A stretch of DNA of 64,000 nt. It comes from Cyanophora paradoxa CCMP329 (taxonomy: Eukaryota > Plantae > Glaucophyta). The position numbers and the translations under genes were made by a program. Positions 3,834 through 52,633 of this stretch are shown here, one piece after another. The stretch is taken from assembly GCA_004431415.1 (NCBI GenBank), contig QPMI01000622.1:75417-139416 (forward strand), in the 5' to 3' direction. How positions within the stretch are numbered: position 1 is the stretch's first letter; every line of letters starts with the position of its first letter. The notes beneath the pieces were generated by a model. That model saw only the letters and a list, made by a program, of their open reading frames with translations. It was not told where the DNA came from and did not search any database.

Positions 3834-4243
3834 GCCTTCCAGAGTGCTCGCGCGCGCCTCCCGCGCTTTTTGAGATGGACAAGCTTTCAACGGCAACTTC
3901 GAAGGGTCAACGCCGTTGGGAGAAGGGAGAAGCGGCAGGCTACCCGAGCTAGGCTCACAGCTGGAGCGAGAAAGCGCACGCGTGCGGTACACGCTTAATT
4001 ATAAGCTTGCAGCTGGCAGCTGCTCGAGACAGTCATTTCATCCAATTTCGGGAATTCCGGTCCGGCGTACAGCATTCAGCACCCGTTGTAGCCAGTAGCG
4101 GCCGCGGGACCCGGCAACCGCAATGGCGCTCAATTCTAGGACGCCACTCAGGGCTGTCTTTGAGCCAGCCGCCGCAGAAGGGGTGAGCGGCGCGGGGCGG
4201 CGCGGGGCGGACCGACGCGGCAACAGTTATCGATATCGATGTT

Positions 4244-5137
4244 GCGATTACGATGCTTGCGATTACGACCGGTGCTTGCGATTTCAAGTTTCAGCTACGA
4301 TGCTTGCGATTACGATTTCAGCTACGATATCGACGTTGCGCACAGCGGTACGCGTTTGTATGGGCCCATAGACTTGGAAGAATTAACGCTTGGTGGTTAG
4401 AATTAAAAGCGGTAAGTTTGTTACGTCTACACGTAATTGGTAAGCTCGGAACTTGGACTTGACAATTTTGCGTACCCCCCTTAGCTGCCATAGGTTGGAC
4501 TTCGCCGCGGCGCAACGGGCGCAAACCGGGTCCCTGGATCTACAAAAAATAGCGCCCGCCTACAAAACTAAGGTAGATAGATGCTAGATGAGCACAACGG
4601 CGCGCTCGCGGCGCATTTGGCACGTTTGTTTTCAAGTTCCCACGTTGCGACGGTTCCCGGCCGGTCTAGTTTGCAGCTGGCACAACGGTCAAGTTGAAAA
4701 AAAGGCGAGAAAACTTTTGAGTTTCCATTAGCTATTAAGTTAATACTGGCTATACGTGATCACCAAGATATGGTAAATCTAAGTTCCGCGATCGCCAAGA
4801 ATTAACCTTCCATGTCTATGGCGCCATACAAACGCGTATCGCTGTGGCGATTACGATGCTTGCGATTACGACCGGTGCTTGCGATTTCAAGTTTCAGCTA
4901 CGATGCTTGCGATTACGATTTCAGCTACGATATCGACGTTGCGATTACGAGGTTGCGATTACGAGTGGGGTACCGGTGCTAGCGGTCGATGTTGCGATTA
5001 CGATGCTTGCGATTACGACCGGTGCTTGCGATTTCAAGTTTCAGCTACGATGCTTGCGATTACGATTTCAGCTACGATATCGACGTTGCGATTACGAGGT
5101 TGCGATTACGAGTGGGGTACCGGTGCTAGCGGTCGAC
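4244..5137 (+). repeat. Tandem array built from GCGATTACGA motifs: 147-bp higher-order unit at 4847-4993 and 4994-5137, plus a partial unit at 4244-4340, interrupted by a MITE
   Basis: Near-identical units are directly visible. Confidence 0.9.
4341..4846. mobile_element. Non-autonomous CACTA/CMC-like TIR element (MITE, 506 bp)
   Basis: Imperfect TIRs of ~40-50 bp starting CACAGCG.TACGCGTTTGTATGG and ending CCATACAAACGCGTATCGCTGTG; 3-bp TSD GCG at 4338-4340 and 4847-4849; AT-rich non-coding interior. Confidence 0.8.
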
Positions 5138-5404: not shown

Positions 5405-7965
5405 TTGTACCGTGGTGCACGGGGCGGCGCACCCTCGAGAGGCTTCGAGCTCCCGCTGGGCGCGCTCGTGGGCCTCGCGGACGCTCCTGTCTTTGCCGTC
5501 CAGGTAGACCTCCCGGGCGGCACTCTCGTGCTGTGCGAGGTGCCGCAGGGCGTCCTCGGCGGTCGTGCCCCCGAAGGCCGCGCCGCAGCGCGCGCATATG
5601 GCGAGGTGCGCGCCGCTGCGATCTCCTACCCCGTCGCTGGTTGCCCCGGGCTCGCTCATTTTTCGACGCTGCTCCAGCGTGAGAGGCGGCGAGAAGTCGG
5701 GAGCGGCGGAGCGCCGGCCGCGGGGTACGTCGCTTCCGCGAAACTCGACCGTCGCCCCGATGGATCGCGGCAGGAACTCGATCGTCGTCCTTGAGCGAGC
5801 TACCTTTCCGATCGAAGGCATTCGACGGGCGCCGCTGGTTCTCGTGCGCGCTGGTGTGCGCGCTGGCCTGGCTTCGATTCGGCGGTTACTCCGGGCGAGG
5901 TGAGCCCGGGGCGATCCGCGGGCCTAGCGCCGCTCTCCGTGGTCTCCTGATTGGGAATTCACTGACGCGGGGCCTCGCGCCCCGCGCAGCCGAGTCTCGG
6001 GGTCTGAATGAAGCCGATCCGCGGAGGCACGCGTACGGAGAAGCAGGAGGCGTCGAAGGGCGCGCCCGGGAGGCAGAGGCGCGGCGGCCGGGGGCGGAGG
6101 AAAGCAAGGGACGCCGCCGCGAAAGCCACCGAGGCCGCCGGCCCGAGCGCCGCGCGGTCCGGCGACGCTGGCGGCGGCGCCGCGGGCAGCGCCCCTCGCG
6201 GGGTGGAGGCCTGGGCCACGGCCGTAGAGACGCGGTGCGTCGCGCTTTGCCGGGCCACCGGCCGCCTCCTGTTCACACCCCAGAGAGCGCAGAGACTGCT
6301 TCGTGGTCCTCCGCAAGGCGGCCGGCGAGCGAACCGTCGATTGCGAGAGGCGCGTGCGGCGTTCGCTCGGAAAGAAGGCGCGTGCGCCTCGTCTCTGCGC
6401 CGCCGCCCCTTCCGAGCCCCTATTCGCAGCGCCCTGACCCCGCGCGCAGACGGGGGTGGCCAGCCCGCTCGACGAGGGCGTCGGGGGCGTGGTCGTGGTC
6501 GCCGTGGGGCGGGCTACGGCGCTGCTGCCGTGCGCGCTCCGCCGCCCGTCCGCCCGGCGCCACGGCGCGTGATCCCCCCTCCGCAGCGTCCTCAGCCCCG
6601 CCCAGACGTACCGCGTCGTCGTGCGGTCCGGCGGCGGCTCGTCTCTTCCCGCGACGGAGGGGCCGGGGCGCGGCCTGAGCCGCGGGTGCGCGGGAGCGGG
6701 CGCCTCGTCCACGACGGACGCCTTCGAGGCCGCTCTGAAGCGGCGGCTCAAGGATGCCGCTCTGGAGCGGCGGGCTCGAGGGGGTAGAGGCGCCGGCGGG
6801 GCGGGGGCGGAGGGGCCGGGGGGGGCCGAGCCGGAGGGGGCGGTGGCGATGGGTGCGGAGGGGGAGGAGGAGGAGGTCCTCGTCGTCACGGGTACGGAGG
6901 GGGGGGAGGAGGAGGGGGGGGAGGGTGCCTTCGTCGTCACCGTGGCCTGCCCGTGTCACGAGTTCGTCAGCTCCCTCGTGCGCGTACCCTGCCCCCGTCC
7001 CCCCGCCGCTCCCCGGGGCGCGATCCGTGCTGCGCAGAGTTCCGCCCTGCGTGATCTGGAGTGGGGGCTGGCGTCCCTGCTGCGCGTGAAATCGCACGGC
7101 TTCGGCCTGTCGGAGGCGGGGGCGTGGGGGGCCGAAGGGGCGGGGCCCATCGCCTGGCCGCCCGAGGCGGGCCTCCGCCACCTCCGGCGGGTGATCCTCG
7201 ACTCGCGCGCCGACGCGAACGTGCTGGACAGGGGCGCTGCCCTGGTCGTCCGGCACGAGGCCGTCAGGCCCGCCCCGGGGCCGGCGCTCCCGTCGTTCCG
7301 GCGGGCGGCGGCGGGGGGGTCGACCCTGGAGCTGGCGCGGATCGCCGCCAGCGCCAGGCTCCACGGGTACGGGCTGGTGCCTCTGCGGGGGGCGGCGGAC
7401 GAGCTCGTGGTGGTGGCGAGGAGGGCGCCGGCGGCGGCGGGCGGGGCGGGGGCCGCCGAGGAGCTGCTGGGCGTGGGCAGGATGGCCGGCGGGCCCCCCC
7501 GAACCGTCACCCTCGCTTGCAGGTGGTGCGTGGGCGGGGGCGCCCCCTCTCGCTTCTCCCGCCCCTCCGCCCCCTCTCTGACGGCCCCGGCGTGCAGGCG
7601 TCGGCCACCTCGTGCGCCCCGGGCGCGCCCCGGGTGGGCGCCCGCGCACGTCGAGCTCGAGTCCAGGGCGAGGGGCGCCCCGGGCCCCGAGGGGTTCGCC
7701 GTCGTCCCCGCCCCCGAGGGGCACGACTGCCTGTTCGACGCGCTCGCGCTGTGGGAGGCCCGGCAGGGCGCTGGACCCGGTGGGGGCCAGCCGCAGCCGC
7801 CCGCCGAGGGCGACGGGGGCCAGCCGCCCCCGGAGCAGAGCGAGGAGGTCTCTCAGGCCTCTCAGCTGCGCGCGCGCGTGGCGAAGTTCGTGGCGAGCGC
7901 GGAGGGCATCGAGCTGCTCCAGAAGCACAGGGTTTGCCCCCCCCCCCCCCCCCCTACCCGTTGCT

Positions 7966-7997
<32 letters not shown>

Positions 7998-8777
7998 TTG
8001 GCCTCCCGCTTGCCCTCCCGCGTTCGCCCCTCCGGTCCGCCCCGCCTCTCACGCTTTCCCCCGCGTGGGGGTCGCAGATGCTGACGGCCGACCTGCGCGT
8101 CTACATGGGGCCGGGCGAGAAGATGCTTCCGGTGGGGGGGTACGCCACCCGCCTGGGGTCCGCTGATCCTGTGCGGGGCCCGGGGTTGATCATGGGAGGT
8201 GCGGCTCTCCCCTCTATCTCGGTGCAGGTCGCTCCCCTCGGGTTTGACCGCGCTGCAGGTCGGATCGTCCTCCTCGCCCTTTCGGAGATCTTCAAGGCGC
8301 CGCTGGTCGTGCACTTTGTGCGGCGCGGCGGCGGCTGGGACTCCCACGTCGTCGACGCGAAGGACCCTCCGCCGGCCCCCGAGGAGGGGGAGGAGGGGGA
8401 GGAGAAGGCGAAGATGGAGAAGAAGAAGGGGAAGAAGGCGGGGGGGAAGAAGGCGCGCCCCCCACGCACGTTCCGTGGCCGCGCCCGCGCCGCCGTGATC
8501 GCTCCCTCCGCAGGCCGCCGGGCCGAGGGGGCGTGGCGCCCTTCCAGCCCTCTCCGGATCCGGGCCGGGCCTCGCCGATGCATCCCCGGACCTCGTTACC
8601 GGCGACGCGCCGTCCGCCCCGGGGCCTGAGCCTGCAGGACCCGGGCCCGCCGTCCCCTCGGGGGCGCCCGGCCCCTCCGGCGTCGCGATCAACCTCCGCT
8701 TCCACCCCGGCAGCGTCATCCGGCCCCCCCACTACGACCTCCTCGTGGCGGGCCCCCGCGACGGCGGTGACGCGTAG
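5405..8777 (+). CDS. Large multi-exon protein with a C-terminal OTU-like cysteine protease (deubiquitinase) domain; 5' end uncertain
   Basis: FAVVPAPEGHDCLFDALA at ~7696-7750 (OTU Cys box), QLRARVAKFV helix, IVLLALSEIFKAPLVVHF and INLRFHPGSVIRPPHYDLLV (His box); stop TAG at 8775-8777. Confidence 0.65.
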
Positions 8778-10258
8778 CGGGCCCCGCTGCACATGCACGT
8801 CTGTCTGCAGTGCATTTCGAATTAAATCGTCTGCGCATGCAGCTGTACTTATACGTGCGTGTGTGACGAGTTAATCATTGAATTATCATTCAGTATGAGT
8901 CGGCCGCGGGAGAGAAGTCGAGAGAGATCGATATCGATGCCACATATATGTCGCACGAGCATGCATGTGATGAATTCGGACCTACGTGTATAGCTATATA
9001 TATACTACCGTACTATATATATAATGCCGTCTGCCGGCGTATTAGGTAAAGCTTATAATTATAATCAGCTATACCTGCTAGGCTGAAACTCGAGCTTCGG
9101 AAGTTCGAACAAGCGAGTCCCTGCGGAGCAGGAGTGGCCTTGGGTCTTGGGGCTTCAAGGCGTGAGGGTGGCAGCTCTTTGTTTTTAAATTGGGGCCCGC
9201 AACCGCGCGCGGTTACGGGGGAGGGGGGAGGACAAATAGGGGGTCCACTCGGCAAGGGTACCCACTCAAGTGAGAGGGTACAGAATTGTGCTGCAAGGGT
9301 ACAGATATCAATGCGGGGCCCAATCGGCCGCAGTTGTACCGAGTACAGTCCCCGAGAGGCCCATTGGTCGTTTCAGCCGAATGAAAACGACTTTCGGGCA
9401 AGTTTCGAATTTCGGCGCTTTTTAAAAAAACTTTGGAGGTGGTTAATAATTATCTATGAATCATTCGAATGTAATTCGCAGTAATAAGGCTCTGTCTAAA
9501 TTGTTTATTTTGATAATCTTTAAACTAACGCATCAAGTATATTCAAAACCCACCTCGTGGCACACAACGACTCTGTCTCATACAAATTTGCTGGCCGGCC
9601 ACGTGGCGCTACGTTAATTTGGAAACTATTTCCTAGCGAATGAGGTACGGTCTCTTGAAAATAATAATTTTCAAATTTCGACTTGGAAGGCCAATGTGAT
9701 TTGCGCTTTCTATTTTTTTCCGGGAAAATGCTTTTCTGTGCTTTTCGACGTGCTGTTACTGCCCATTAGAGGCCTCTCATAGGAAAACGGGCCGGACCAT
9801 CGTGCTCCCCAGGGTCTAAAATGGGGTAGTAGGTGTCCTCAAATATACGAATTTCGCTTTCTAAAATTTGTGACAAGATACCAACAGACCTAAGGGCCTC
9901 TCCTTTCCCCAAGGCCGATCTGCAGGCCTAGCGCTAGCTGCAGGCCCAGCTGCAGGCAGGTGCCAGGGGTCTGGGTTGGGGGTACGTCTTCGCCGCCGGT
10001 TCGCTTCGCAGCGGCGCGCCGATCGGGTTTCGAGACTTCGCGCGCAGCGCGGAAACGAAACGTAGGGGCACCTTTCATCGGCGAAAACCGTAGCGGCGCC
10101 GCTCCGATGACGATCGCGGTGGTGCGCGGTGCGCTCGTCCTGGCTCATTCGCCTAGCCTAGCCTTCCTGGCTCGTTCGCCTACCTGGCCGGCCGTCGTCC
10201 TCCGCTCCGCTCCGTCAGCCCGGCGGCTGGGGCGGGCGTTGTCGGGCGCGCCTAGGCC

Positions 10259-13200
10259 ATGTCGGTCTGCCCTTCCGCCTGCGCTGCCGCGCGCGCCCTT
10301 CTCCGCGTTTGACGTCGCGGTTGCAGGGCGGGCGCCCGCCGGACAAGGGCGCCCGATCGCCGGGCTCCGATCCCGATCCTGACGCCGACACATGTGGCGT
10401 GTGCGGGTGAGGGCGCTCGCCTCTTCCCGCGTGGGGGTTGGGTTCGATCCCGGGGTCATGCAGGAATGCGTCCGGTGGCCACTGGATCCAGTGCGAAGGC
10501 GCGTGCAAGGGCTGGTTTCACTGCAGGTGCGTCTCCCTGCGCGTTGACGTTTGCCCGGCCCGGCGCGCGCCCGGTCTCTGACTGTCCTCAAAAAAGGTGC
10601 GTTAGAGTCTCGGCGAGGGGGGCGGAAGCCATCGAGAGCTGGGTGTGCCCGAAGTGCGGCGAGCTTCCAGCCCGAGCGCCCGTGAGTGCCCCCCCGCGCC
10701 CGACCGCCCGCTCCCCCTCGCCCTCCGATCTCACGCGCTTCGTGCGCAGGCTCCCGATGCTGCAGTTGGAGCCGCTCGGGGTGCGCAGGCGAGCTCCTCG
10801 AGCTCCGGCCAGCGGGGGGCGGCGGCGAGCACCTCTGAGGGGGGCAAGCGGCCCCTCTCGCCCGCGGCGCCGGGCCCCTCCGACGTCGACCAGAAAAGGT
10901 CCCGTCGGGGCCGGGCCGAAGGCGGTCGGGGCAAGCGGGGGGGCCCGCATGGCGCCCCCGCCGCCGGCGCCGATGATAAACGGGCTCGGCGGGGCGGCGG
11001 CGGCGGCGGCGGCGGCGGCGGAGGAGGAGGAGGTGGCGGCGGCGGCGGCGGAGCGGCGGCGGCGGAGGTGGCGGCGGCGGGGGGTCGGCGCGAGGGGCGC
11101 CGGCTGCGGCGGTTGCAGCGGGCCGATCCCCGCCAACGGGGACGGCGCCGTGCGCTGTGCGGGGCCGCGCGGGCGCGGACGCTGCGGCGCCGCCCACCAC
11201 GAGTGTTGCCGCGATCTGGCTCCGTTCAAGGGCGTCGTTGAGCTCCAGCAGCCGGGGCGCTGGCGGGCCCAGCTCGCCGTACCTGGAGAATCGCAGCCGG
11301 CGGTCAGCGATGGTCACCTTTCGCCCGTCGCGGCGGCCAAGGCGTACGACCGCATGGTCATCGCCCTGATCGGCCCCGAGCGGGCCAAGGAGGAGGGCCG
11401 CACGAACTTCCCGCCGTCCGTCTACCTCTGCGAGCCGTTCTTCCGGAACCCTTGGAAGCCGCCGTTGGATGCCAGGGTGCGCAGAGGGGCGCGCGCGGGT
11501 CCCCTTTAGGGTCCCGTTCAACCCCCGCCCTCTCCTCGCCCCCAGGCCAGGCTGCAAGAGGTCCTCGATGCCGTCGCTGCGCTGGACGCGGAGCGGGCGC
11601 GGGGAGAGGAGGAGGCGGTGAAGCGGCGGGCCAAGGCGAGGGGCGACAAGGCGAGGCGGGCGGCGGAGAGGGAGGCCAAGGCGGAGGCGCGGGGGGCGGG
11701 GCGGGGCTCCAACGACGGCGCCCCGCATGACAAGTACAGGGGCGTCAGGCGCTACGCGGAGGTCTCCAGGGTCTACTCCTGGAGGGCTGAGCACGAGTTC
11801 ATGGGCCTCACGGTGCTCGCGCCCCCCCTCTCGAGCTCGCATCCTCCCCCGCCGCTGCTGACCTCGGCCCCCCCCCCCCCCCCCGCGCAGCTGCACCTCG
11901 GAACCTTTGGGGCGCCCGTCTCCGCCGCGCGGGCCGTCGATCGCGCGGTCATCGTCCTGCGCGGTGCCGAGGAGGCGAGCTCGAGGGGGCTCACCAACTT
12001 CCCCGTCGCCGGCTACCTCTGCGAGCCCTCCCTGCGGAGGCTCCTCGCCCCAAAGGGGCCCGCCATCGGCTCCCGCCACCCCGACATCGTCGCGGCGCGC
12101 GCCGGCGGGGGCGGGGGCGGCGGTCCTCCGACGGAGGGCGTCGTGGTGCGTCCCCTCCCTCCCTCCCCTTCTCAGGGGTCCCGGCGGGTCGTGATTCCTT
12201 CGTGATTCCTTTCGCAGCGCGCGGTGCAGGCGGCCGTCGGCGCCCTCCTCGCCGCGAGGCGGCCGGGCGGGGGCGAGAGGGGCCGCTGGTACTGCCCCTG
12301 CTGCCGCCTGGACGCCGGCGCTGCGGCCGTCGCCGCATACATGCGGACGAAGTACAGGCTGTGCGCGCCTCTCGCCCCCGCCCCCCCTCCGCCGCGCCCG
12401 CCCGCTCTCCGTCTGACCGACCGCGCGCCTTCCCCCTGCGGCAGGCGTTTCAAGGCGGAGCACGTGCAGCCCCACATCGCGGCGGCCGCGGAGCGCACGG
12501 GCTACTTCTGGGAGCTGCTGCGCGCCGCGAAGCCCGCCCTCGAGTTCTACGCCAGGGGGGGTCTCCGCGTGAAGCAGGCCTCGGAATCCGTGCGCCCCCC
12601 CCCCCCTCCCCCGTACCCCTGTCTCGTCCCTTCACTCCTTCGAACCCCTGACTCCTTCGAACGGGCGCAGCTCTACCGCCCCGTCAAGCCCCCCCCACCC
12701 TCCTCGAGCCCTCCCTCCCCCTCAAGCTCTCCCGGGCCAGACCCCCCCGGCCCCCCCCGGCTGAAGGTCGTGAAATCCGAGGGGTGGGATCCCCTCACGA
12801 GGCGCCGCTTCGGCGACGGCGCGAGGCACGGCGTCAAGATGTACAGGACGGATCCGCTGGCGGGGTGGGAGAGCGTGCGGGGCGCCGTCGAGAGCTGCAG
12901 TGCGCGGACGTACCCCCCCTCCGACTCCGCGACCCCCTCCTCCCCTCCCCAAAGCCTCACCCTGCACCCCCTCCCTCGCCCCAGTTGAAGAGGAGGCGAG
13001 GGCGGAGGCTGCCCGGAGCGCGGAGGAGCGGGAGGAGGAGCGGAGGGCGGCGGAGGCCGCGGGCGTGTCGAAGGCGGAGCTGAAGAGGCGGGAGGCGGCG
13101 AGAGCGAAGGCCGAGGCGGCCGAGGCGGCCGAGGCGGCGAAGCCGCGCCTGGCGACGCTCGTGTACGTCCTCCGGCGCTGCTGCCTCGAGGGCGAGACGA

Positions 13201-15582
13201 GGGACCGGATCTGGCGGGAGATCGTGGCGGCCGCCATCGTCTACAACGCCTGCATCGGCCTCATCAAGCTCCACCGCTGGGTGCGTGCCGGACCCTGCCC
13301 GCTCAGGCGCGTTGCTGACGCCCCGGCGCGCGCGCTTCGCCGCCCCTGGCCCCCAGATCGTCGACGACCTGAGCCAGAATGCAGCGCGCAACCTGCTGCA
13401 TCGTGCCTTCGCCAACGTGCACACCTACACCGGCGACCGCGCGGCCCCTCGGCGCGCTGCCTCGGAGGGGTTGTCCGAGGCGTGGGCGGGGCTGGCCGAG
13501 GAGGTGACGGAGGAGGGCCACTACGACCTCGTCATCGCGGGGCGGGGGGCGATGCTCGCCGAGCTGGGCCCCGAGGAGAGGCGCTGCTTCCACGGGGCGC
13601 TCATGCACACGCGGGAGGCGGCGGCGGACGACGCGCTGCAGGCGGCGAGGGAGCAGATCGCGCGGGGCAAGCCGCTCAAGAACCTCAAGTGCGGGGATGC
13701 CCACTCCCTCACCCCTGAAACCGATTCCCCCCTTAATGTTCTCGCGCGCAGGGATCGCAGCCTGCGGAGGCGGCAGTGCTCCGTCGTCGTCAAGTCGGGC
13801 GACTACAACAGGGGTCTCGGGGCCCACTGGGGCTTCCTCAAGATGCTCCCCACGCACGACGGGCCCCTGCCGTCCGCGATCGAGCACGACGCGCGGCTCG
13901 TCCTGAAGCCGAGCGGGAGCGTGTGGTGCGTGTCAACTTCCCACTCCTTCCCAAACCCCTCCTTTCGCTTCGCTCTCGTTGAGCGTGGGGAGCGTCGCAG
14001 GTTCTGCATCCCCGTCGAGATGGAGAAGGCGCGCGCGGCCCGCACGACGAGGGTCATGGCGCGGACCTTGCCGGCGGAGGGCGACTGCGAGGCGAAGACG
14101 ACGGTGGCCCGCACCGTGCCGGCGACCTCTCGCCGGCGGAGCCCCAGGGACCCGGCGGGCGACGGGGGCGACCGCGAGTCCGAGCTGGCCCGCGAGGCCT
14201 GGCTGGAGCTCCGCGGCAAGTCCCTCGTCGCCGTCGACCCGGGCTCCCGCAAGCACATCTCCTGCTTCTGCCCGGACGGGCGGGCCTTCGAGGTGCGGTG
14301 GTCTCGCCTTCTCCCCCTTTGTCGTCCATCCGACGACGCCCCTCCCCCGCGCAGTTCGGTGCTGGTCTGTCTCACGCACGGGAGCCCGCACTGAGGCGGG
14401 CGGCGGCGCTCATGGCCAAGTCGGAGCTGAAGCCGGGCCCCGCTGCGTGCGCCCCCCCTCCCTCCTTCCTCCCTCCCTCCCTCCGCGCTCCCTCCCTCCC
14501 TCAATCGGTTTGCCAGGGGCGGGTCGGCCCCGCTCAGCGCTCGCACGCGCCGCCGGCTGCGGAAGAAGGCGCTCCGGTTGATCGAGCACGAGCGCAACGT
14601 GGGGCTGGACGCCCTGCGCGTCATCGCGCGGTGCGCCCCCCTGAGTGCTGCAGCCTCTGCGTGGCCTCTGCGGTTGACACCCCCCTCAGGTTCCTCGTGG
14701 AGAACTTCGACTACATCATCATCCCGGAGTTCCGCACGAGCGAGATGGTGCGCTAGCGCGATCGGCGTCGGCCCTCCGTAGGCAATGGGCGGCAGGTCCG
14801 GCGCAAGGGGCGGATTCTCGGGGCCGCCGCTGCGCGCCAGCTGCTCTACTGCCGCCACTATGAGTGAGAGCGGCTGATTCTGGTTCTGGTTCGGGGGGGC
14901 TCACTGCTCGCCCGTCGCCCTCCACAGGTTCCGCTGCATCCTGCAGCAGGCCGCCCTGCACCGCCCGGAGTGCACGGTGCTCCTCGTCTCCGAGCACTAC
15001 ACCTCCAAGACCTGCGGGGCGTGCGGGTGTCTCCACACGGAGCTCGGCGCGGACGAGACGTTCCGCTGCCCGAGCTGCCCGGCGGAGATGGACCGGGACC
15101 TCCAGGCCGCCAGGTGAGTGAATTGACTAGTCGTGGCAACCTCCGCTAGAATCGTAATCGCAACCTCCGCTATAGCTGAACCAGTAGAATCGTAATCGCA
15201 ACCTCCGCTCCTTAAATCGTAATCGCAACCTCCTTAAATCGCGATCGTAATCGCAACCTCCGCTAGAATCGTAATCGCAACCTCTGCTAGAATCGCAATT
15301 GAATCGTAATCGCAACCTCCGCTATATCTGAACCAGTAGAATCGTAATCGCAACCTCCGCTCCTTAAATCGTAATCGCAACCTGACCGTCTGTAATCGCA
15401 GGAACATCCTCCTGAGGTTCCTCTCGGGCGTGGACGCGGGGCTCCGCCTCAAGCCCCTTCTGCTGGCCGGCTCCGGCCCGCTGCGGGCCGCCCCTGCGGC
15501 CGCCCCCGCCCCCCAAGCTGCGGCGCAGTCCGCGTCGATCGCTGCTCGTAGGCAGCTCGCTACGCCGGCCTCGTCGTCGTAG
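10259..15582 (+). CDS. Intron-rich Fanzor2 (TnpB/IS607-type RNA-guided endonuclease) fused to an N-terminal PHD finger, two AP2 domains and a Zn-finger-like segment
   Basis: Hand splicing gives PHD CGVCG..WIQCEGACKGWFHCRCV..WVCPKC (~10393-10660); AP2 FKGV..GRWRAQL..AAAKAYDRMVIAL..TNFP (11225-11415); AP2 KYRGVR..SWRAE..LHLGTF..AARAVDRAVIVLRG..TNFP (11731-12005); IVYNACI; RuvC-I VAVDPG (D at 14236); bridge helix RRRLRKKALRL..; FLVENFDYIIIPEFRTSEMVRRKGR; HYEFR; VSEHYTSKTCGACG (E at 14992); FRCPSC; MDRDLQAAR|NILLRFL (D at 15097). Intron phases are consistent from the first AP2 to the stop at 15580-15582. Confidence 0.88.
15130..15401 (+). repeat. Intronic array of eight ATCGTAATCGCAACCT(CCGCT) units inside the last Fanzor intron (15114-15401)
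   Basis: Directly visible; the core is the reverse complement of the GTTGCGATTACGA motif of the 4244-5137 array. Confidence 0.9.
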
Positions 15583-15700
15583 TTTGGGCAGGATAGGGGG
15601 ACCGCGTACCCCCCTACAGCGGGCCCTGCCTGCGTTGCTCGCAGGCTTGTCGCCCCCGTAGGTAGCACAGACCCAGCTCAAGCTCCTGCGATGTCCGCAG
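15583..15700 (+). ncRNA. Candidate Fanzor omegaRNA scaffold
   Basis: Lies immediately 3' of the Fanzor stop. Hairpins TAGGGGG/CCCCCTA (15594-15616) and GCCTGCG/CGCAGGC (15628-15646), with alternative pairing GGCAGG/CCTGCC. Position is as expected for TnpB/Fanzor omegaRNAs; boundaries unknown. Confidence 0.4.
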
Positions 15701-16341
15701 CTAGCATGCCTGTGTTATCAATGCGCTGCTCGAGAGATGCATACCCCCTTCGAAACACTTCTGCGTCCGTGTACCCCCAATGGTGACGGTGACGCAGCGA
15801 ACCAATTGGACCAAATTTTCACCGAACAGACTGTGGTAAACCTGAACAGATCATGATCGGTTGGGGTTGGGTCAAGTAAAGCCGTTTGAACTTACGGAGC
15901 TCGCAGCTTTATCCTCCACGCGTCTCAGCCGCGTCTGCAAGCAGGTCGATCCAGCAAAAACTGCAAGTCTGCAAAGCGTTGCTCCCTGCGGCGAGGCGTC
16001 CTCTCTTCGAAGGCTTGCCCAGCACCCCCCACGCGTACGGTGCGCCGAACTGGCTACGTCCAGACCCGATATCCGACAGGCCGACGCCCGATGCGCTGTG
16101 ACGCGGGCCCTCTTTGGTCGCGCCGTCGAGCGAAGAGCACGTCCGGCACACGAGCACTCCTTCCCTGACACGTCTCCTTCGTCGCAGATCCGTCAGCGCC
16201 CGCTCCTCGCCCCGGACCACCAGGTCAGTTGCAGCCGCCCATTTGGGCGCGTCCGCGCGCCTCTCCGGTCTTTCCGCCGACGACCGGCGCAGACCTCAAG
16301 GCACCCGTATATTTGAAGTGCAGCAGAAACAGCGCGGCGAG

Positions 16342-17798
16342 ATGGCCACCGCAGTGCCGCCCGTTACTGTGAACAACGAGCCGGTCAAGGCTCCCGCGTC
16401 CGGCGAGTCCCTCACGGCGACTGGCAGCAGCCCGCCGCCCCAGAAGCTCGTGCGTCGCTGCGCTGTCGACGTCGACGCCCGCCGCGTCGACGGGCCCGCG
16501 CCTGCGGGGTTCGCTGACAGGAGCCGGGGCCCGGCCTTGGCGCGTGCGCAGGTCACGAGCGTGCCGACGGTGCAGGCGCTCAAGGACGTCTTCCGCTCCG
16601 TCCCGCTCCCCGTGACCGTCGTCGCCGTCGCCGCCACGCCCGAGTCCCACAACATGCCCTTCGGGTGCGCTCCGGGCGCGCCCTCGCCTCGCGATCGCCT
16701 CCCGGCGGGCGGGGCCAACGGGCGGGGCAGGATGACGGCGAACTCGGTGGCTGCCTGCTCGATGGAGCCGCCCCGCATCTCCCTCAACATCATGAAGGCC
16801 CGCCCCGCGCCCGCGCCCCGCCCCCCCGCGCCACGACTCGAGGCGGCACGCGCAGGGCTCGATGATGCACAAGCTCATGTGCGAGGTCCCCGAGGAGCGC
16901 CGCCTCCCCTTCGTCGTCCACGTCCTCGCCCCCGAGCAGGAGGCCCTCGCCGGCAAATTCGCCTGTCCGCCCCCGCCCGCCCGCCCCGCTCCGACCCGCC
17001 CGCCGCTCACGCGCGTCCTGCGCCGGCGCAGTCCACAAGCCGGGGGAGCCTTCGCAGTTCGACGCGGTGCCGCACGAGCTGGACCCCGAGACGGGGGTGC
17101 CGATGCTCTCGGAGGCGTGGTCCCTCTTCAAGTGCACCCTCCTCCGCGTCATCGACGCCGGCGACCACTCCCTCGTCGTCGCCGACGTCACCAAAACCAT
17201 CCGCGCCCAGTCCCGCTCCCCCGTGCCCCACGCCTTCCCCGCCATCTGGCACGCCGGCCACACCCAGGAGCCCACGGCCGTGTGCGGGGCGGCCCCCAAG
17301 CCGCTGCCGCAGGTGGAGTGCGGGTTCGCGACGGTGGCGCACCGGCTGCCGCGGCCGGCGGTGGCGATCACGACGCAGGAGGCGTGCGCGATGTCGGACG
17401 CCTTCCGCCTCCTCTCCCTCACCCCGCCCCTCTTCTCCTTCACCATCAAGAAGAGCAACGCCACGCACGAGTCCCTCGCCCAGGCCGGCGCCCCCTTCCT
17501 CCTCCGCATGCTCGGCGGCGCCAAGGGCATGGGCGGCTCCCTCGCGGACGCCTCGTGCCGCGTGCTCGAGGCGCACGACGTCGGCGACGCCTCGCTCATC
17601 GTCTCCGAGCCGATGCTCCTCTCCACCATGGCCCCCACCCCCGCCGACCGGGCCGCCGGGGCCATGATGGCCTACGGCCACCGCGACACGCCCAACTTCT
17701 GCTCCGCGAGCCCCACGCCCCCGGCCCCCGCCGCCCCCGCCCCCGCCCCCGCTCCGCCCGCCACCCAGCAGCCGGCCGCCCCCACCGCCTCCGCCTGA
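16342..17798 (+). CDS. Flavin reductase-like (FMN-binding split-barrel) protein, apparently two tandem domains, multi-exon
   Basis: FRSVPLPVTVVA..GMTANSVAACSMEPPRISLNI..FVVHVLAPEQEALAGKFA..GVPMLSEAWSLFKC..DAGDHSLVVADV, then a second degenerate repeat (LPRPAVAITT..LSLTPPLFSFTI..HDVGDASLIV). Confidence 0.85.
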
Positions 17799-46793: not shown

Positions 46794-47070
46794 GGAGGGG
46801 GGTACGTGTTATGTCCAAATGTCCAAGTGTCCAAGTGTCCAAGTGTCCAGATGTCCAAGGCCAAGGCCTAGGCCTACGATGAGCTAGCGCTAGCTATAGA
46901 TAGCGGGGTACATGTTATGTCCAAATGTCCAAATGTCCAAGTGTCCAGATGTCCAGATGTCCAAGGCCAAGGCCTAGGCCTACGATGAGCTAGCGCTAGC
47001 TATAGATAGCGGGGTACATGTTATGTCCAAATGTCCAAATGTCCAAATGTCCAAATGTCCAGATGTCCAG
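46794..47070 (+). repeat. Three blocks with 106-bp period, each GGGGTAC.TGTT plus six 8-bp (A/G)TGTCCA(A/G) units
   Basis: Directly visible; a fourth block lies at 51288-51344. Confidence 0.9.
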
Positions 47071-47089
47071 AGACTTTGACTTGAGCTCT

Positions 47090-47092
<3 letters not shown>

Positions 47093-47184
<92 letters not shown>
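47093..47184. repeat. (TC)n microsatellite
   Basis: Uninterrupted TC run of ~92 nt. Confidence 0.97.
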
Positions 47185-47187
<3 letters not shown>

Positions 47188-49479
47188 CACATGCACATGC
47201 ACCTTAAGAAAAGGAGGTGCTCTTGGTACCTGGTATCTGAGATTTGCCTCTTTTCCTTGAGGTGGTCACAAGGATCTTGTGTACACCTCATGAAAAGTTC
47301 TATTAGAAGTTTCCAAGAGGTGGTCACATCCTGCCAACCTACTACGCCTGGAAGATCATCCACGCGCTCGCGACGGCGAGGCGCGTGCATCCAGCCTTCG
47401 AGCCGGTGTGGCTGCGGGAGAAGCGCCTGGCCTTCTGGCAGGAGACGGCCTCCTGCCCCTCACCCGCTTCATCATCACCCACTGCGTCGTCGACCCCACC
47501 ACCTACCTCGTCGCTCGAGACGGAGGGCGCATGACGAGCGTGGCGGGCATCTGCGAGTACATCTCGCGCACGGAGGGCCCCGACGCCTCCGCCGCCGTCG
47601 CCGCCGACTCGAGAACGGCGGCTGGACGAGACCATCGCCGCCTTCGGCCCCAGTGCCGCCTCTTCTCCTACAAGCCGGCGGCGTCTGGAGACCTACATCC
47701 GCGGCATCGTCCCCAAGGCCCCCTCTCCCTCGGCGCGAGCCAGCCGGCGCTGCAGGCCATCCAGTTCTTCGAGCCGGCGGACCCGGAGACGGCCCTTCCC
47801 GTCAAGCCTCGAACAGGGCAGGGCAAGCGCGCCCGCAACTCGGCCCCGCCTTCGTCCCGCCCCGCCCCGTCGTCGCCCCCGCCGCCCAGCAGCACGCCGG
47901 CCAGCAGCGCATCGACGAGATGCTGCCGCGCCAGGTCCGGCCCCGCACCCGCGCCCTCCCGTACCCCCCTTCCCCCGCCCCCTCCTGACCTCGGCCAGGG
48001 CGAGGCGCTCCCCCGCGGCAGCTTCCGCAGCAGCCCGTGACGGCGGCGCGGCCCAGCGGCTACGGCAGCTCGGCTCGCGCTCGCCTCGGCTCGCGCGCGC
48101 TCGCCTCGGCCGCCTCCAGCAGCGCCGGCCCAGCCCGTCCCTTCTCCTCGCGACCGCAGCCCGTCCCGCGCTTCGCCGCGCCGTCCCGCCCGGCGCCGTC
48201 CTCTCCGCGATCCAGGGCTTCGGGGCCCAGCAGGAGGCCGAGCGGCAGGCGCTGGCGGCGCGCCAGGCGCGCGAGGCGGAGGAGCGGCGCCAGGCCCTCT
48301 GGGCCCAGCGCCTCCAGCGCACCCTCGCCTTCCGCGCCGAGCTGGAGGCGGGATTCCGCGCCCGCCAGATCTCCGGTGCGGAGGCCTCGGAGACTTGGCG
48401 GGCGTTCGAGGCGGAGACGGCGGGGCTGGCGAAGACCCTCGCCCAGCCTACCGGCGCGTGGCCGTCCGCAGTCCTACGCGCGGCGGGCGACGCTGGAGGC
48501 CTCGCGGGCGGAGATCGACGCGGCGGAGGAGCAGGCGGAGCGCGAGGAGGCCGAGGACAACGCGCGCTTCCGGCACCTCCACCACTGAGGCCTCGAGGCG
48601 GTATTTTTTCTCAACCCCTTCCAATTCGGTCTCGCGATGGCCTCGCTGACAGCTATCCCCGCATTACTCGCTAGGAGCCCTCGCCGCGACCCTCACCTGG
48701 CTCCTCGGCGGCACGCCCACGGCCTCGGCCGTCATCGGCGTGGGCTTCGGCTACGCCGCCAAGACCCTCTACGCCCCCGGCTCCGTCTCGATGGCGACGG
48801 CCGGCATGCGCCCCGCCGGGCGTTAACTCTCCTTTCAAAGTTCCATTCCCCCTTTCCCTTTTCAAAGTTGCGACGTCCTTTGAGTCGTTGGCATTTAAAT
48901 TTTCTTCATCGTCTGTACACGTCTAACATGCCCAACGCCGTAGAGAAGCTGTTGTGTACGGTGTTCAAATCGGACTCGCGCTGCAGCAAGATCGGCGAGG
49001 CTGCCAAGGGCGGGGCGGGCGAAGGCCGGCGGCGGGCGGAGGGGCCTAAGATAAGGGCGCGGACCCGGCGCCGCCGGCGCTAAAGTCGATTAAGGCTGCG
49101 GGCAAGGGCCGCGGCGTCGGGCCCTGCCCCTCGTGGCGATCGCCCGGGCCAGCGCGAGGCGGCGCACGCGGCGACGGCGGCGCTGGCCTCGCAGCAGCAG
49201 AGGGAGGGGCGCCGCGCCTGAGCGCCGGCCTCTGGTCGCAGCCTGCGCCGCGCGCGAGTACGGCGTCAGCGCTTACTTCGACGGCGCGAACGAGCTGAGC
49301 CGCCAGGAGATCTGGGCCTGGAGGCGCGGCGCGCGGTCGACGGGCACCTGCCGTTGCTCGTGGCGCTCGGCGGCTCGCTCCTCATGGTCTGGTACCTGCG
49401 CGGCTTCGCGATTTAGATAGATTTTCGAAGCGCTAGCTAGTAGAGATGAGCTGGCTCGACGCGCTGCTCACCAAGACCT

Positions 49480-51208: not shown

Positions 51209-52633
51209 GAAGTGACGCGGACGCGAATACGTCATAGTCGAATACGTCATAGTCCAAACCTGGACTCGGGACTCGGCCCGGGCCCTGGGAGGGGGGTACA
51301 TGTTATGTCCAAATGTCCAAATGTCCAAATGTCCAAATGTCCAATTGAAAGGTTGCGGAGGTTGCGGACGCGTCACAAATACGTCATAGTCGAATACGTC
51401 ATAGTCCAAAACCTGGACTTGGGACCTGGGCCCAGACTCTCGCCAAGTTTCAAATAATAATACTGTACCCCTGTTATCTGCAAGCTTATCTTATCGTTAT
51501 CGTGTCACCTATCCTATCCGATCCTATCGCTATCCTTTCGCGATCGCTTGACTACACTATTGCATTCATTGCTTTTGAATGTAGTTAATGTCATAGCAAC
51601 TTGAACATGATGTCATGATGATTTCAAGTTAAATACCGGGTACGGTGTTTTGTTCAAGTCTCTTTTTTTACCGGCAGGGCCGGGCCGAGTCCCGAGTCCA
51701 GGTTTGGACTATGACGTATTCGACTATGACGTATTTGTGACGCGTCCGCAACCTCCGCAACCTTTCAGTTAATTAATTAAGCACTGGGCTAGCGCTAGGC
51801 TAGCTAGATATCGATACCAGCTAGCTAGCTCAGCTCTACCTGCCCAAGTTGATGGTATCTAGCAGCGCCTGCTCCTCTAAGTCTGCACCGCCTCCTCCTA
51901 GCGCTAGCGCTAGCTCGATACCGCCTCCAGACTTGATCTCCCTTGGCTTCAGCCACCGAAGGGGCTCAGGCCACCTCCTCCTGGTGAAGCCGGTATCGTT
52001 GCGCTTGTCCAGCTTGAGGTAGCGGTAGGGCGCCGGCGCCGGCCAGTCGGCCTGTGGCTGCTGGCCTCCTTGGCTATGTCCTTGGGCCTACGCGGAAGCA
52101 GGTCGGCCTTGGCCTTGGCCTTCTGCAGAGGGCCCAGCGCCTTGAACTTCGGTGCCTTCGTCGCCGGCAGGGCCTTCGGCTGAGGCTTCGGTGCCTTCTG
52201 CGCCTTCGTCTTCGGCTGCGGCTGCGGCTTTAGCTGCTTCGATTTCGGCATACTTCTTGCTCATAAATGAGAAAAGCGCCTCGAAGTCGGCTTTTATCTC
52301 CTCCTTGGTCCAGGATGTCATCTGAGTCGGGTCACCTGAGAACGGCGCATCGAACGCCACGTGGAGCGATTTGCAGGCCTGAGCTATCATTGGCTCCGGC
52401 CAGGCCAGCTCGATCAGCTGAAGGTAGATACTGAGGGCCTTGTCGAGCTTGGCGCCCTGGGAGACTAGCTGGGAGATGGCGGGCTCCATGGTACTGATTA
52501 AGCAGCTAGCCGGGTTCAGAAAATGGCGCCAAGTCCGAGCTTATTTTTTACCGGCGGGCCTGGGCCGAGTCCCGAGTCCAGGTTTTGGACTATGACGTAT
52601 TCGACTATGACGTATTCGCGTCCGCGTCACTTC
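51209..52633. repeat. Nested inverted repeats (outer 51209-51285/52556-52633, inner 51346-51433/~51680-51767) around an AT-rich core; candidate origin or fused termini
   Basis: Four copies of a module containing two AATACGTCATAGTC repeats followed by CAAA(A)CCTGGACT.GGGAC, two on each strand. Confidence 0.88.
52088..52489 (-). CDS. Viral hypothetical protein with an acidic/Ala-rich tail
   Basis: ATG-started ORF with protein-like composition, preceded by the ATTTTCTGA motif. Confidence 0.55.
   Translation of the reverse strand: MEPAISQLVSQGAKLDKALSIYLQLIELAWPEPMIAQACKSLHVAFDAPFSGDPTQMTSWTKEEIKADFEALFSFMSKKYAEIEAAKAAAAAEDEGAEGTEASAEGPAGDEGTEVQGAGPSAEGQGQGRPASA

Follow-up and report, generated by a model that had tools for sequence, protein, structure and literature searches.

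How does an RNA-guided nuclease come to share a gene with domains that read histones and bind DNA? The question is raised by a gene on the forward strand of a 64,000-nucleotide stretch of the Cyanophora paradoxa CCMP329 genome (contig QPMI01000622.1, positions 75,417 to 139,416), referred to here as the window. The gene appears to join a Fanzor2 nuclease to a PHD finger and two AP2-like domains. The explanation we favour, with a probability of about 50%, is that of a transposon-borne Fanzor2 that gained an N-terminal reader module. Searches for the nuclease and reader parts were made per exon or segment, and the exon coordinates served for the frame, the spacing and the codon-change counts.

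A Fanzor2 nuclease core in a spliced gene

Over its host genes the window has a G+C content of 68-83%, and GT..AG introns of 50-90 nt are numerous, in keeping with the values for GC and intron length published for C. paradoxa (PMC6704402). The Fanzor gene was modelled with 20 exons and 19 introns between positions 10259 and 15582 (+). The parts that make up its nuclease are as follows.

12985..14292 (+): exons 11-14, the HTH/REC/WED part and the RuvC-I DPG, from hhalign and colinear profile matches
14355..15582 (+): exons 15-20, with bridge helix, Pro at the RuvC-II site, relocated Glu, zinc ribbon, RuvC-III DRD and stop codon, from PF07282, an ApmFz2 match and RNA joints
15114..15401 (+): intron 19, 288 nt, enlarged by a tandem repeat and spliced in RNA

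The core motifs originally read from the sequence (DPG, IIIPEF, EHYTSK, CxxC..CxxC and DRD) are all present, and the spacing of DPG, the relocated Glu, the zinc ribbon and DRD is the published one. The DPG of RuvC-I, at 14236, aligns with the invariant DPG of relatives, and IIIPEF at 14715 places a Pro in the canonical RuvC-II site (14715-14732). The relocated Glu is found in EHYTSKTC at 14992, 148 aa past the DPG and six residues ahead of the zinc ribbon; in the Fanzor pattern the catalytic Glu lies six residues before the zinc finger and 120-160 aa after DPG (PMC10711439). The CxxC pairs of the ribbon stand at 15013 and 15067 with spacings of 14 and 4, which fits CxxC-x(12-18)-CxxC-x(4-8)-D, and the DRD of RuvC-III follows at 15091. 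Two residues after DRD there is a Gln where Asn is usual, as is also the case in one intact relative. The RuvC-II Pro and displaced Glu had been taken as a mark of IS607 TnpB and Fanzor2. Both are present. DPG and the relocated Glu are common to all Fanzors and pro-Fanzors (PMC10711439), and the Fanzor2 assignment therefore rests on the profile and not on the motif.

Exon 19 matches Pfam PF07282 with 50.3 bits (E=2.7e-13; cut-off 26.3), matches ApmFz2, and retrieved 80 metagenomic loci at 41-65% identity, many of which encode intact DPG-type proteins. Nine exons (11-14 and 16-20) map in order on a profile of 34 full-length relatives, each above 100 shuffles. Exons 12-14 reach an hhalign probability of 90.8 (E 1.2e-6) against this profile, and exon 11 aligns weakly (E 0.14) at the position expected for an HTH_OrfB_IS605-like domain, again above 100 shuffles. 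The HTH/REC/WED part encoded by exons 11-14 is ~100 aa longer than in the relatives, whose profile matches ApmFz2 at 1e-63 and no Fanzor1 structure. The profile searches thus place the C-terminus in the Fanzor/TnpB family, as the original prediction had it. Judged from its sequence, the nuclease is a Fanzor2 with an intact triad, closer to ApmFz2 and IS607 TnpB than to Fanzor1. In prokaryotic genomes four weak matches were obtained and a close cyanobacterial relative was not found.

After splicing, with GT..AG introns, the reading frame stays open between 11084 and the stop codon at 15580-15582. Its 1,071 codons span 16 exons and run from the first AP2-like domain (AP2-1) through the complete Fanzor2 core. 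The frame-consistent protein proposed for this region thereby stands, once the donor of intron 10 is moved from 12910 to 12900, as frame consistency requires. Public sequencing runs contain the locus, and the gene is expressed in several studies. Mapping of RNA had been proposed as a check. In contigs of X1 and X4, two RNA-type runs that belong to separate studies, at least nine of the predicted introns (6, 11, 12, 13, 14, 16, 17, 18 and 19) are skipped exactly at their GT..AG ends; these are the joints listed by contig comparison, among which introns 1-5, 7-10 and 15 do not figure. The ends of further RNA contig pieces fall at 10750, 12144 and 12985, and the RNA indels shown within exons are in-frame. 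No contig among the RNA and DNA contigs examined spans the whole gene. That the AP2 and nuclease parts are continuous is supported by overlaps between contig pieces together with frame consistency, and we regard it as highly probable. At 13795-13811 an RNA copy carries five substitutions within 17 nt that do not appear in the DNA runs, possibly through gene conversion or because it is a distinct paralog.

The N-terminal reader module and the GGC tract

Ahead of the nuclease the gene contains these segments.

10259-10264, 10327-10406, 10464-10526 and 10597-10681 (+): exons 1-4, start codon and C4HC3 PHD finger, frame-consistent, with Pfam and PDB matches
10750..10982 (+): exon 5a, a low-complexity basic linker in frame 1, seen in RNA contig pieces
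10983..11091 (+): GGC/poly-Gly tract, which holds the PHD-AP2 frame break
11105..11210 (+): Cys-rich segment, in which the first six PHD-like ligands occur but the terminal CxxC pair is lacking, read from the sequence
11222..11440 (+): AP2-like domain 1, divergent, from its similarity to copy 2, a model and the pair profile
11732..12030 (+): AP2-like domain 2, interrupted by intron 6 (11813-11890), which is spliced in RNA; from PDB and ESM Atlas
12218..12899 (+): exons 8-10, with a WYCPCC motif, a later HxxxH and a Pro/Ser-rich linker, frame-consistent

The PHD finger that had been placed upstream of the AP2 repeats is borne out, with all eight C4HC3 ligands in order over exons 2-4. The Pfam PHD model matches exon 3 with its flanks, which is half of the domain, at 21.5 bits (E=2.3e-4). 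Searching the PDB gave 25 matches, nearly all to PHD proteins, the best being the PHDs of KDM5B, KDM5A and AL3 (Alfin-like 3). Alignment to 2kgg indicates that two Trp ten residues apart, of the KDM5A-PHD3 type, are retained; in KDM5A PHD3 these two Trp form the trimethyl-lysine cleft (PMC9172573). From the retained cage Trp this PHD is predicted to be of the H3K4me3-reading type. Certain PHD signatures fail to bind H3 (PMC9640981).

The two AP2 domains of the original prediction are kept here in a weaker form. They lie in the same open reading frame (ORF) as the nuclease, are 51% identical to one another and are both divergent. Their YRGV, LGTF and AARA-D-A motifs align to AP2/ERF structures, which also rank first in a search with the pair profile. 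For domain 2 the top four PDB matches are AP2/ERF structures, at weak E values of 0.05-0.13, and ESM Atlas gave AP2 clusters at 0.91. A low-confidence single-sequence model of AP2-1 (pLDDT ~55) has three strands followed by a helix, and its fold search was uninformative. Because the cut-off of Pfam PF00847 was missed (13.1 bits against 33.3, with an intron retained in the query), we name the repeats AP2-like only. The Cys-rich segment has no Pfam match and exons 8-10 match no family. Within these exons the CxxC..HxxxH segment reported earlier does have its Cys and His motifs, but the 21 residues from Cys to His are not standard C2H2 spacing and Pfam gives no support. As an alternative to the C2H2-like reading, the six PHD-like ligands at 11105-11210 and a W-x-C-P-x-C at 12284-12305 could form a single PHD split by the AP2 pair.

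The link between the PHD finger and the rest of the protein required closer attention. It had been claimed that the last PHD exon shares an open frame with AP2-1. A genomic ORF (10394-11509) does join PHD exon 4 to AP2-1, by reading through intron 4 (10682-10749, 68 nt). This intron is spliced, since RNA contig pieces in X1 and X4 begin exactly at its acceptor, 10750, with 275-410 further nt on their 5' side. With intron 4 removed, exon 5 opens in frame 1 and reaches a stop at 11239, and AP2-1 is in frame 2, so that the claim of a shared frame fails. The frame break must lie in the GGC tract, because the stretches on either side, 10750-10982 and 11108-11416, are covered by RNA contigs that have no frameshifting indel. 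An intron inside the tract was considered and ruled out, as no single intron there restores the frame. The GGN codons of the tract run for 20 codons in frame 1 and then for 8 in frame 0, after which frame 2 is required, as would result from two single-base losses in a poly-Gly repeat. We consider the frame break to be probably an assembly error, because the register slips by one base twice, because both Illumina runs differ from the window by a one-base indel at 12979, and because the published assembly was built from PacBio reads with correction by Illumina, a platform that had difficulty at this GC content (PMC6704402). An mRNA with a short PHD ORF and 15 introns after it would also be an odd design. 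Very probably a presumed indel in the GGC tract hides the fusion of the PHD finger to the AP2-Fanzor2 part, in a predicted protein of ~1,260 aa.

The same tract gives a foothold to a different explanation, that of a passenger fusion or decaying copy, in which captured host PHD/AP2 exons are idle for the nuclease or a true GGC frameshift leaves a short PHD peptide. The assembled sequence does have the stop at 11239, the AP2 copies are far under the Pfam cut-off, and the variants described below are neutral-like. Against it stand the 1,071 codons open across 16 exons, the in-frame RNA indels shown in exons and the retention of every PHD ligand and both Trp, and we regard this explanation as unlikely.

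A candidate mobile unit and what the module might do

Three further features bear on whether the gene is cargo of a transposon.

15583..15727 (+): high-copy 3' tail, candidate right end of the element and omegaRNA scaffold; the bases that follow would be the guide
4019..4029 and 15725-15735 (+): possible 11-bp target-site duplication, a sequence match
5800..8780 (+; start approximate): upstream spliced gene with OTU-deubiquitinase-like Cys and His motifs by eye, a possible second cargo gene

The summed DNA contig depth is 725 over the tail, against ~30-70 beside it. In all four runs contigs of other loci diverge at 15727-15728, with loose ends that differ from one another, which argues for a fixed right end near 15727; Fanzor omegaRNAs lie at the right end of their elements (PMC10432273). 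The tail has no Rfam match and is absent from viral contigs. The DNA runs contain two to three haplotypes mid-gene, near-identical copies exist, and divergent Fanzor paralogs are transcribed. For 40 of 104 variants between the window and an RNA copy, we counted 10 synonymous and 27 non-synonymous codon changes, which corresponds to the neutral share of 26% and speaks weakly against a constrained host gene.

The 11-bp duplication would frame a possible unit of 11.7 kb, holding the OTU-like gene and the Fanzor gene and lying between two head-to-head genes. In length it resembles the target duplications of 7-19 bp described for Chlamydomonas Fanzor elements (PMC3627910). Pfam, PDB and single-sequence fold searches returned nothing for the OTU-like gene. 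No serine recombinase TnpA was recognised among the coding segments of the window and no transposase gene in the 11.7-kb unit; the element would thus be non-autonomous, and we do not class it as IS607 because no serine recombinase lies beside the nuclease.

The multi-copy tail, the near-identical copies and the neutral-like variation lead us to favour transposon cargo over domestication. The original prediction had offered both scenarios; that of a transposon is better supported by these three lines of evidence, and nothing supports domestication as such. A domesticated host factor would be an RNA-guided defence or regulatory nuclease, to which the many tail copies supply a set of guides directed at repeats or endogenous viruses. 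The host-like intron density, expression in several studies, transcription-factor-like domains and a virus-like region within the same window would all suit such a role. Transposon Fanzors, however, commonly gain introns (PMC10530073), and this gene still has a multi-copy tail at its end, near-identical copies and a triad of active type, and shows no purifying signal, so that we judge domestication to be improbable.

If the gene is transposon cargo, the tail and its downstream flank would form the omegaRNA, with a guide taken from the flank of the element. As with TnpB and other Fanzors, cutting would be directed at the insertion site on the allele that lacks the element, and repair would copy or retain the element. 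The H3K4me3-type PHD and the AP2 domains would raise residence on chromatin that is open and promoter-like, in which a small nuclease of bacterial origin could reach DNA and a new copy could escape methylation silencing. Repeats in C. paradoxa are methylated and silenced (PMC12344493). We infer that the Fanzor2 may be gated by chromatin marks. A bolder proposal is that the H3K4me3-reading PHD and the AP2 domains license or redirect Fanzor2 cleavage at active promoters, in a RAG2-like control that is part of a lineage-wide radiation of chromatin-module Fanzors; we hold this tentatively and think it somewhat doubtful.

AP2 domains act as end-binding modules in some mobile-element enzymes, and the module might serve the element apart from cutting. 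The AP2 domains would then bind the promoter or ends of the element and the PHD would keep its chromatin active, for anti-silencing or transposase recruitment. Methylation of C. paradoxa repeats (PMC12344493) and the possible deubiquitinase-like gene in the same 11.7-kb unit would fit; that none of the Pfam, PDB and fold searches supports the OTU identity counts against it. We think this explanation improbable.

Several points tell against a transposon-borne Fanzor2 with a chromatin-reading module. No contig bridges the GGC tract at 10983-11091. The tail has hairpins, and their fold z of -1.4 is weak and not significant. The 11-bp target duplication may be chance, as such a match arises at ~1% of control positions, or ~5% allowing for the uncertain end position. 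The variant set, with 40 of 104 variants and close copies, leaves room for selection, and nothing in it points to maintenance of the N-terminal module. Any insertion in a gene-dense genome, moreover, lies near a promoter.

A pair of terminal inverted repeats (9240-9300 and 15740-15790) was considered as ends and ruled out, the DNA past 15727 being low-copy with no long inverted match. A 10-bp direct match between the upstream spacer (9306-9315) and the tail end (15716-15725) may be chance or an alternative left boundary. One short repeat family forms arrays at 4237-5136, near the putative left end, and, inverted, at 15123-15390 in intron 19, with 12 and 8 core units respectively. At 5447-5614 (-), inside the putative unit, a short segment resembles coding sequence and contains a CxxC and two His.

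Downstream of the element, at 16339-17795 (+), lies a host gene with repeated flavin-reductase-like domains. From 39000 to 64000 an intron-poor block of lower GC (~62%) carries ORFs on both strands, like an endogenous algal DNA virus; segments resembling a helicase, an ATPase and a capsid protein were recognised by eye, whereas ten of its ORFs had no Pfam match and six no exact database match. A nested element may be marked by the repeat arrays in this block (46799-47188 and 51224-52618), which comprise an 8-bp repeat, a tandem unit of 106 bp, a (TC)48 tract and repeats of 15 bp that run in either orientation.

Known systems and significance

The Fanzor2 proteins ApmFz2 (of mimivirus, PDB 9B0L), NlovFz2 and MmeFz2 share with this nuclease the DPG, the RuvC-II-site Pro, the relocated Glu, the C4 ribbon and DRD, apparently the TnpB-like HTH/REC/WED order, and a conserved 3' flank. 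Those proteins are ~500 aa long, whereas here ~1,260 aa are predicted, with 19 introns, and the ~750 residues ahead of the HTH, which would include the PHD and two AP2-like domains, compare with a median of 211 in 36 relatives. A further difference is that no IS607 serine recombinase is seen near the gene here. Mobile-element enzymes fused to AP2 or to a histone-mark reader are known in HNH-AP2 homing endonucleases and chromodomain integrases, which are not RNA-guided. TldR and the exapted Cas12f transcription factors are RNA-guided, bacterial and nuclease-dead. They are comparable as TnpB-family proteins turned to regulation (10.1101/2023.11.30.569447; PMC12259090) and differ from the present gene, which keeps an intact triad and has chromatin domains of eukaryotic type as partners. 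The Helitron-linked CRe-1/2/3 elements of Chlamydomonas likewise carry a multi-exon algal Fanzor, are non-autonomous and have over-represented 3' ends (PMC3627910); unlike our candidate they encode Fanzor1, with no reader domains described, and no Helitron ends are shown here. The nearest functional analogy is RAG1-RAG2, a transposon-derived nuclease that is localised, and its inhibition relieved, by an H3K4me3-reading PHD (PMC6510410, PMC5175335). RAG, in contrast, is a protein-guided DDE transposase, domesticated, with the PHD on a separate subunit, and is unrelated to TnpB.

With a 916-aa relative as query and 104 candidates scored, no PHD or AP2 was found among 40 database proteins of 504-1,006 aa, in which the only fusion is a Naegleria helicase-Fanzor gene model. 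This N. lovaniensis model (L082:4001-8302; DEAD helicase and Fanzor2, 1,006 aa) is maybe a gene-caller merge. A metagenomic Fanzor2 ORF of up to 916 codons (L003:240-2987) has a long unannotated N-terminal part. A phmmer search of 1.84 billion representatives with exons 12-14 gave no match, and nor did word-based searches using exon 19 and AP2-1, so that the reader module has no database relative in these searches. PHD, AP2 and Cyanophora go unmentioned in the supplements of two surveys of Fanzors, and no paper in the literature searched pairs Fanzor with Cyanophora. Published Fanzors have gained introns and nuclear localisation signals and 'often contain various domains' (PMC10530073). The combination of PHD and AP2-like domains with Fanzor2 is therefore apparently new, as had been supposed, in a nuclease that is itself of known Fanzor2 type.

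The finding adds glaucophytes to the range of Fanzors. It also bears on the way in which an RNA-guided nuclease of bacterial descent deals with nucleosomes and with silencing inside the nucleus of a eukaryote. So far the described adaptations comprise introns, short extensions at the N-terminus and nuclear localisation signals, beyond which fusion to a histone reader and to DNA-binding domains would be a further step. A natural reader fusion would permit a direct test on chromatin with and without the module, and would offer a design precedent for chromatin-aware compact editors.

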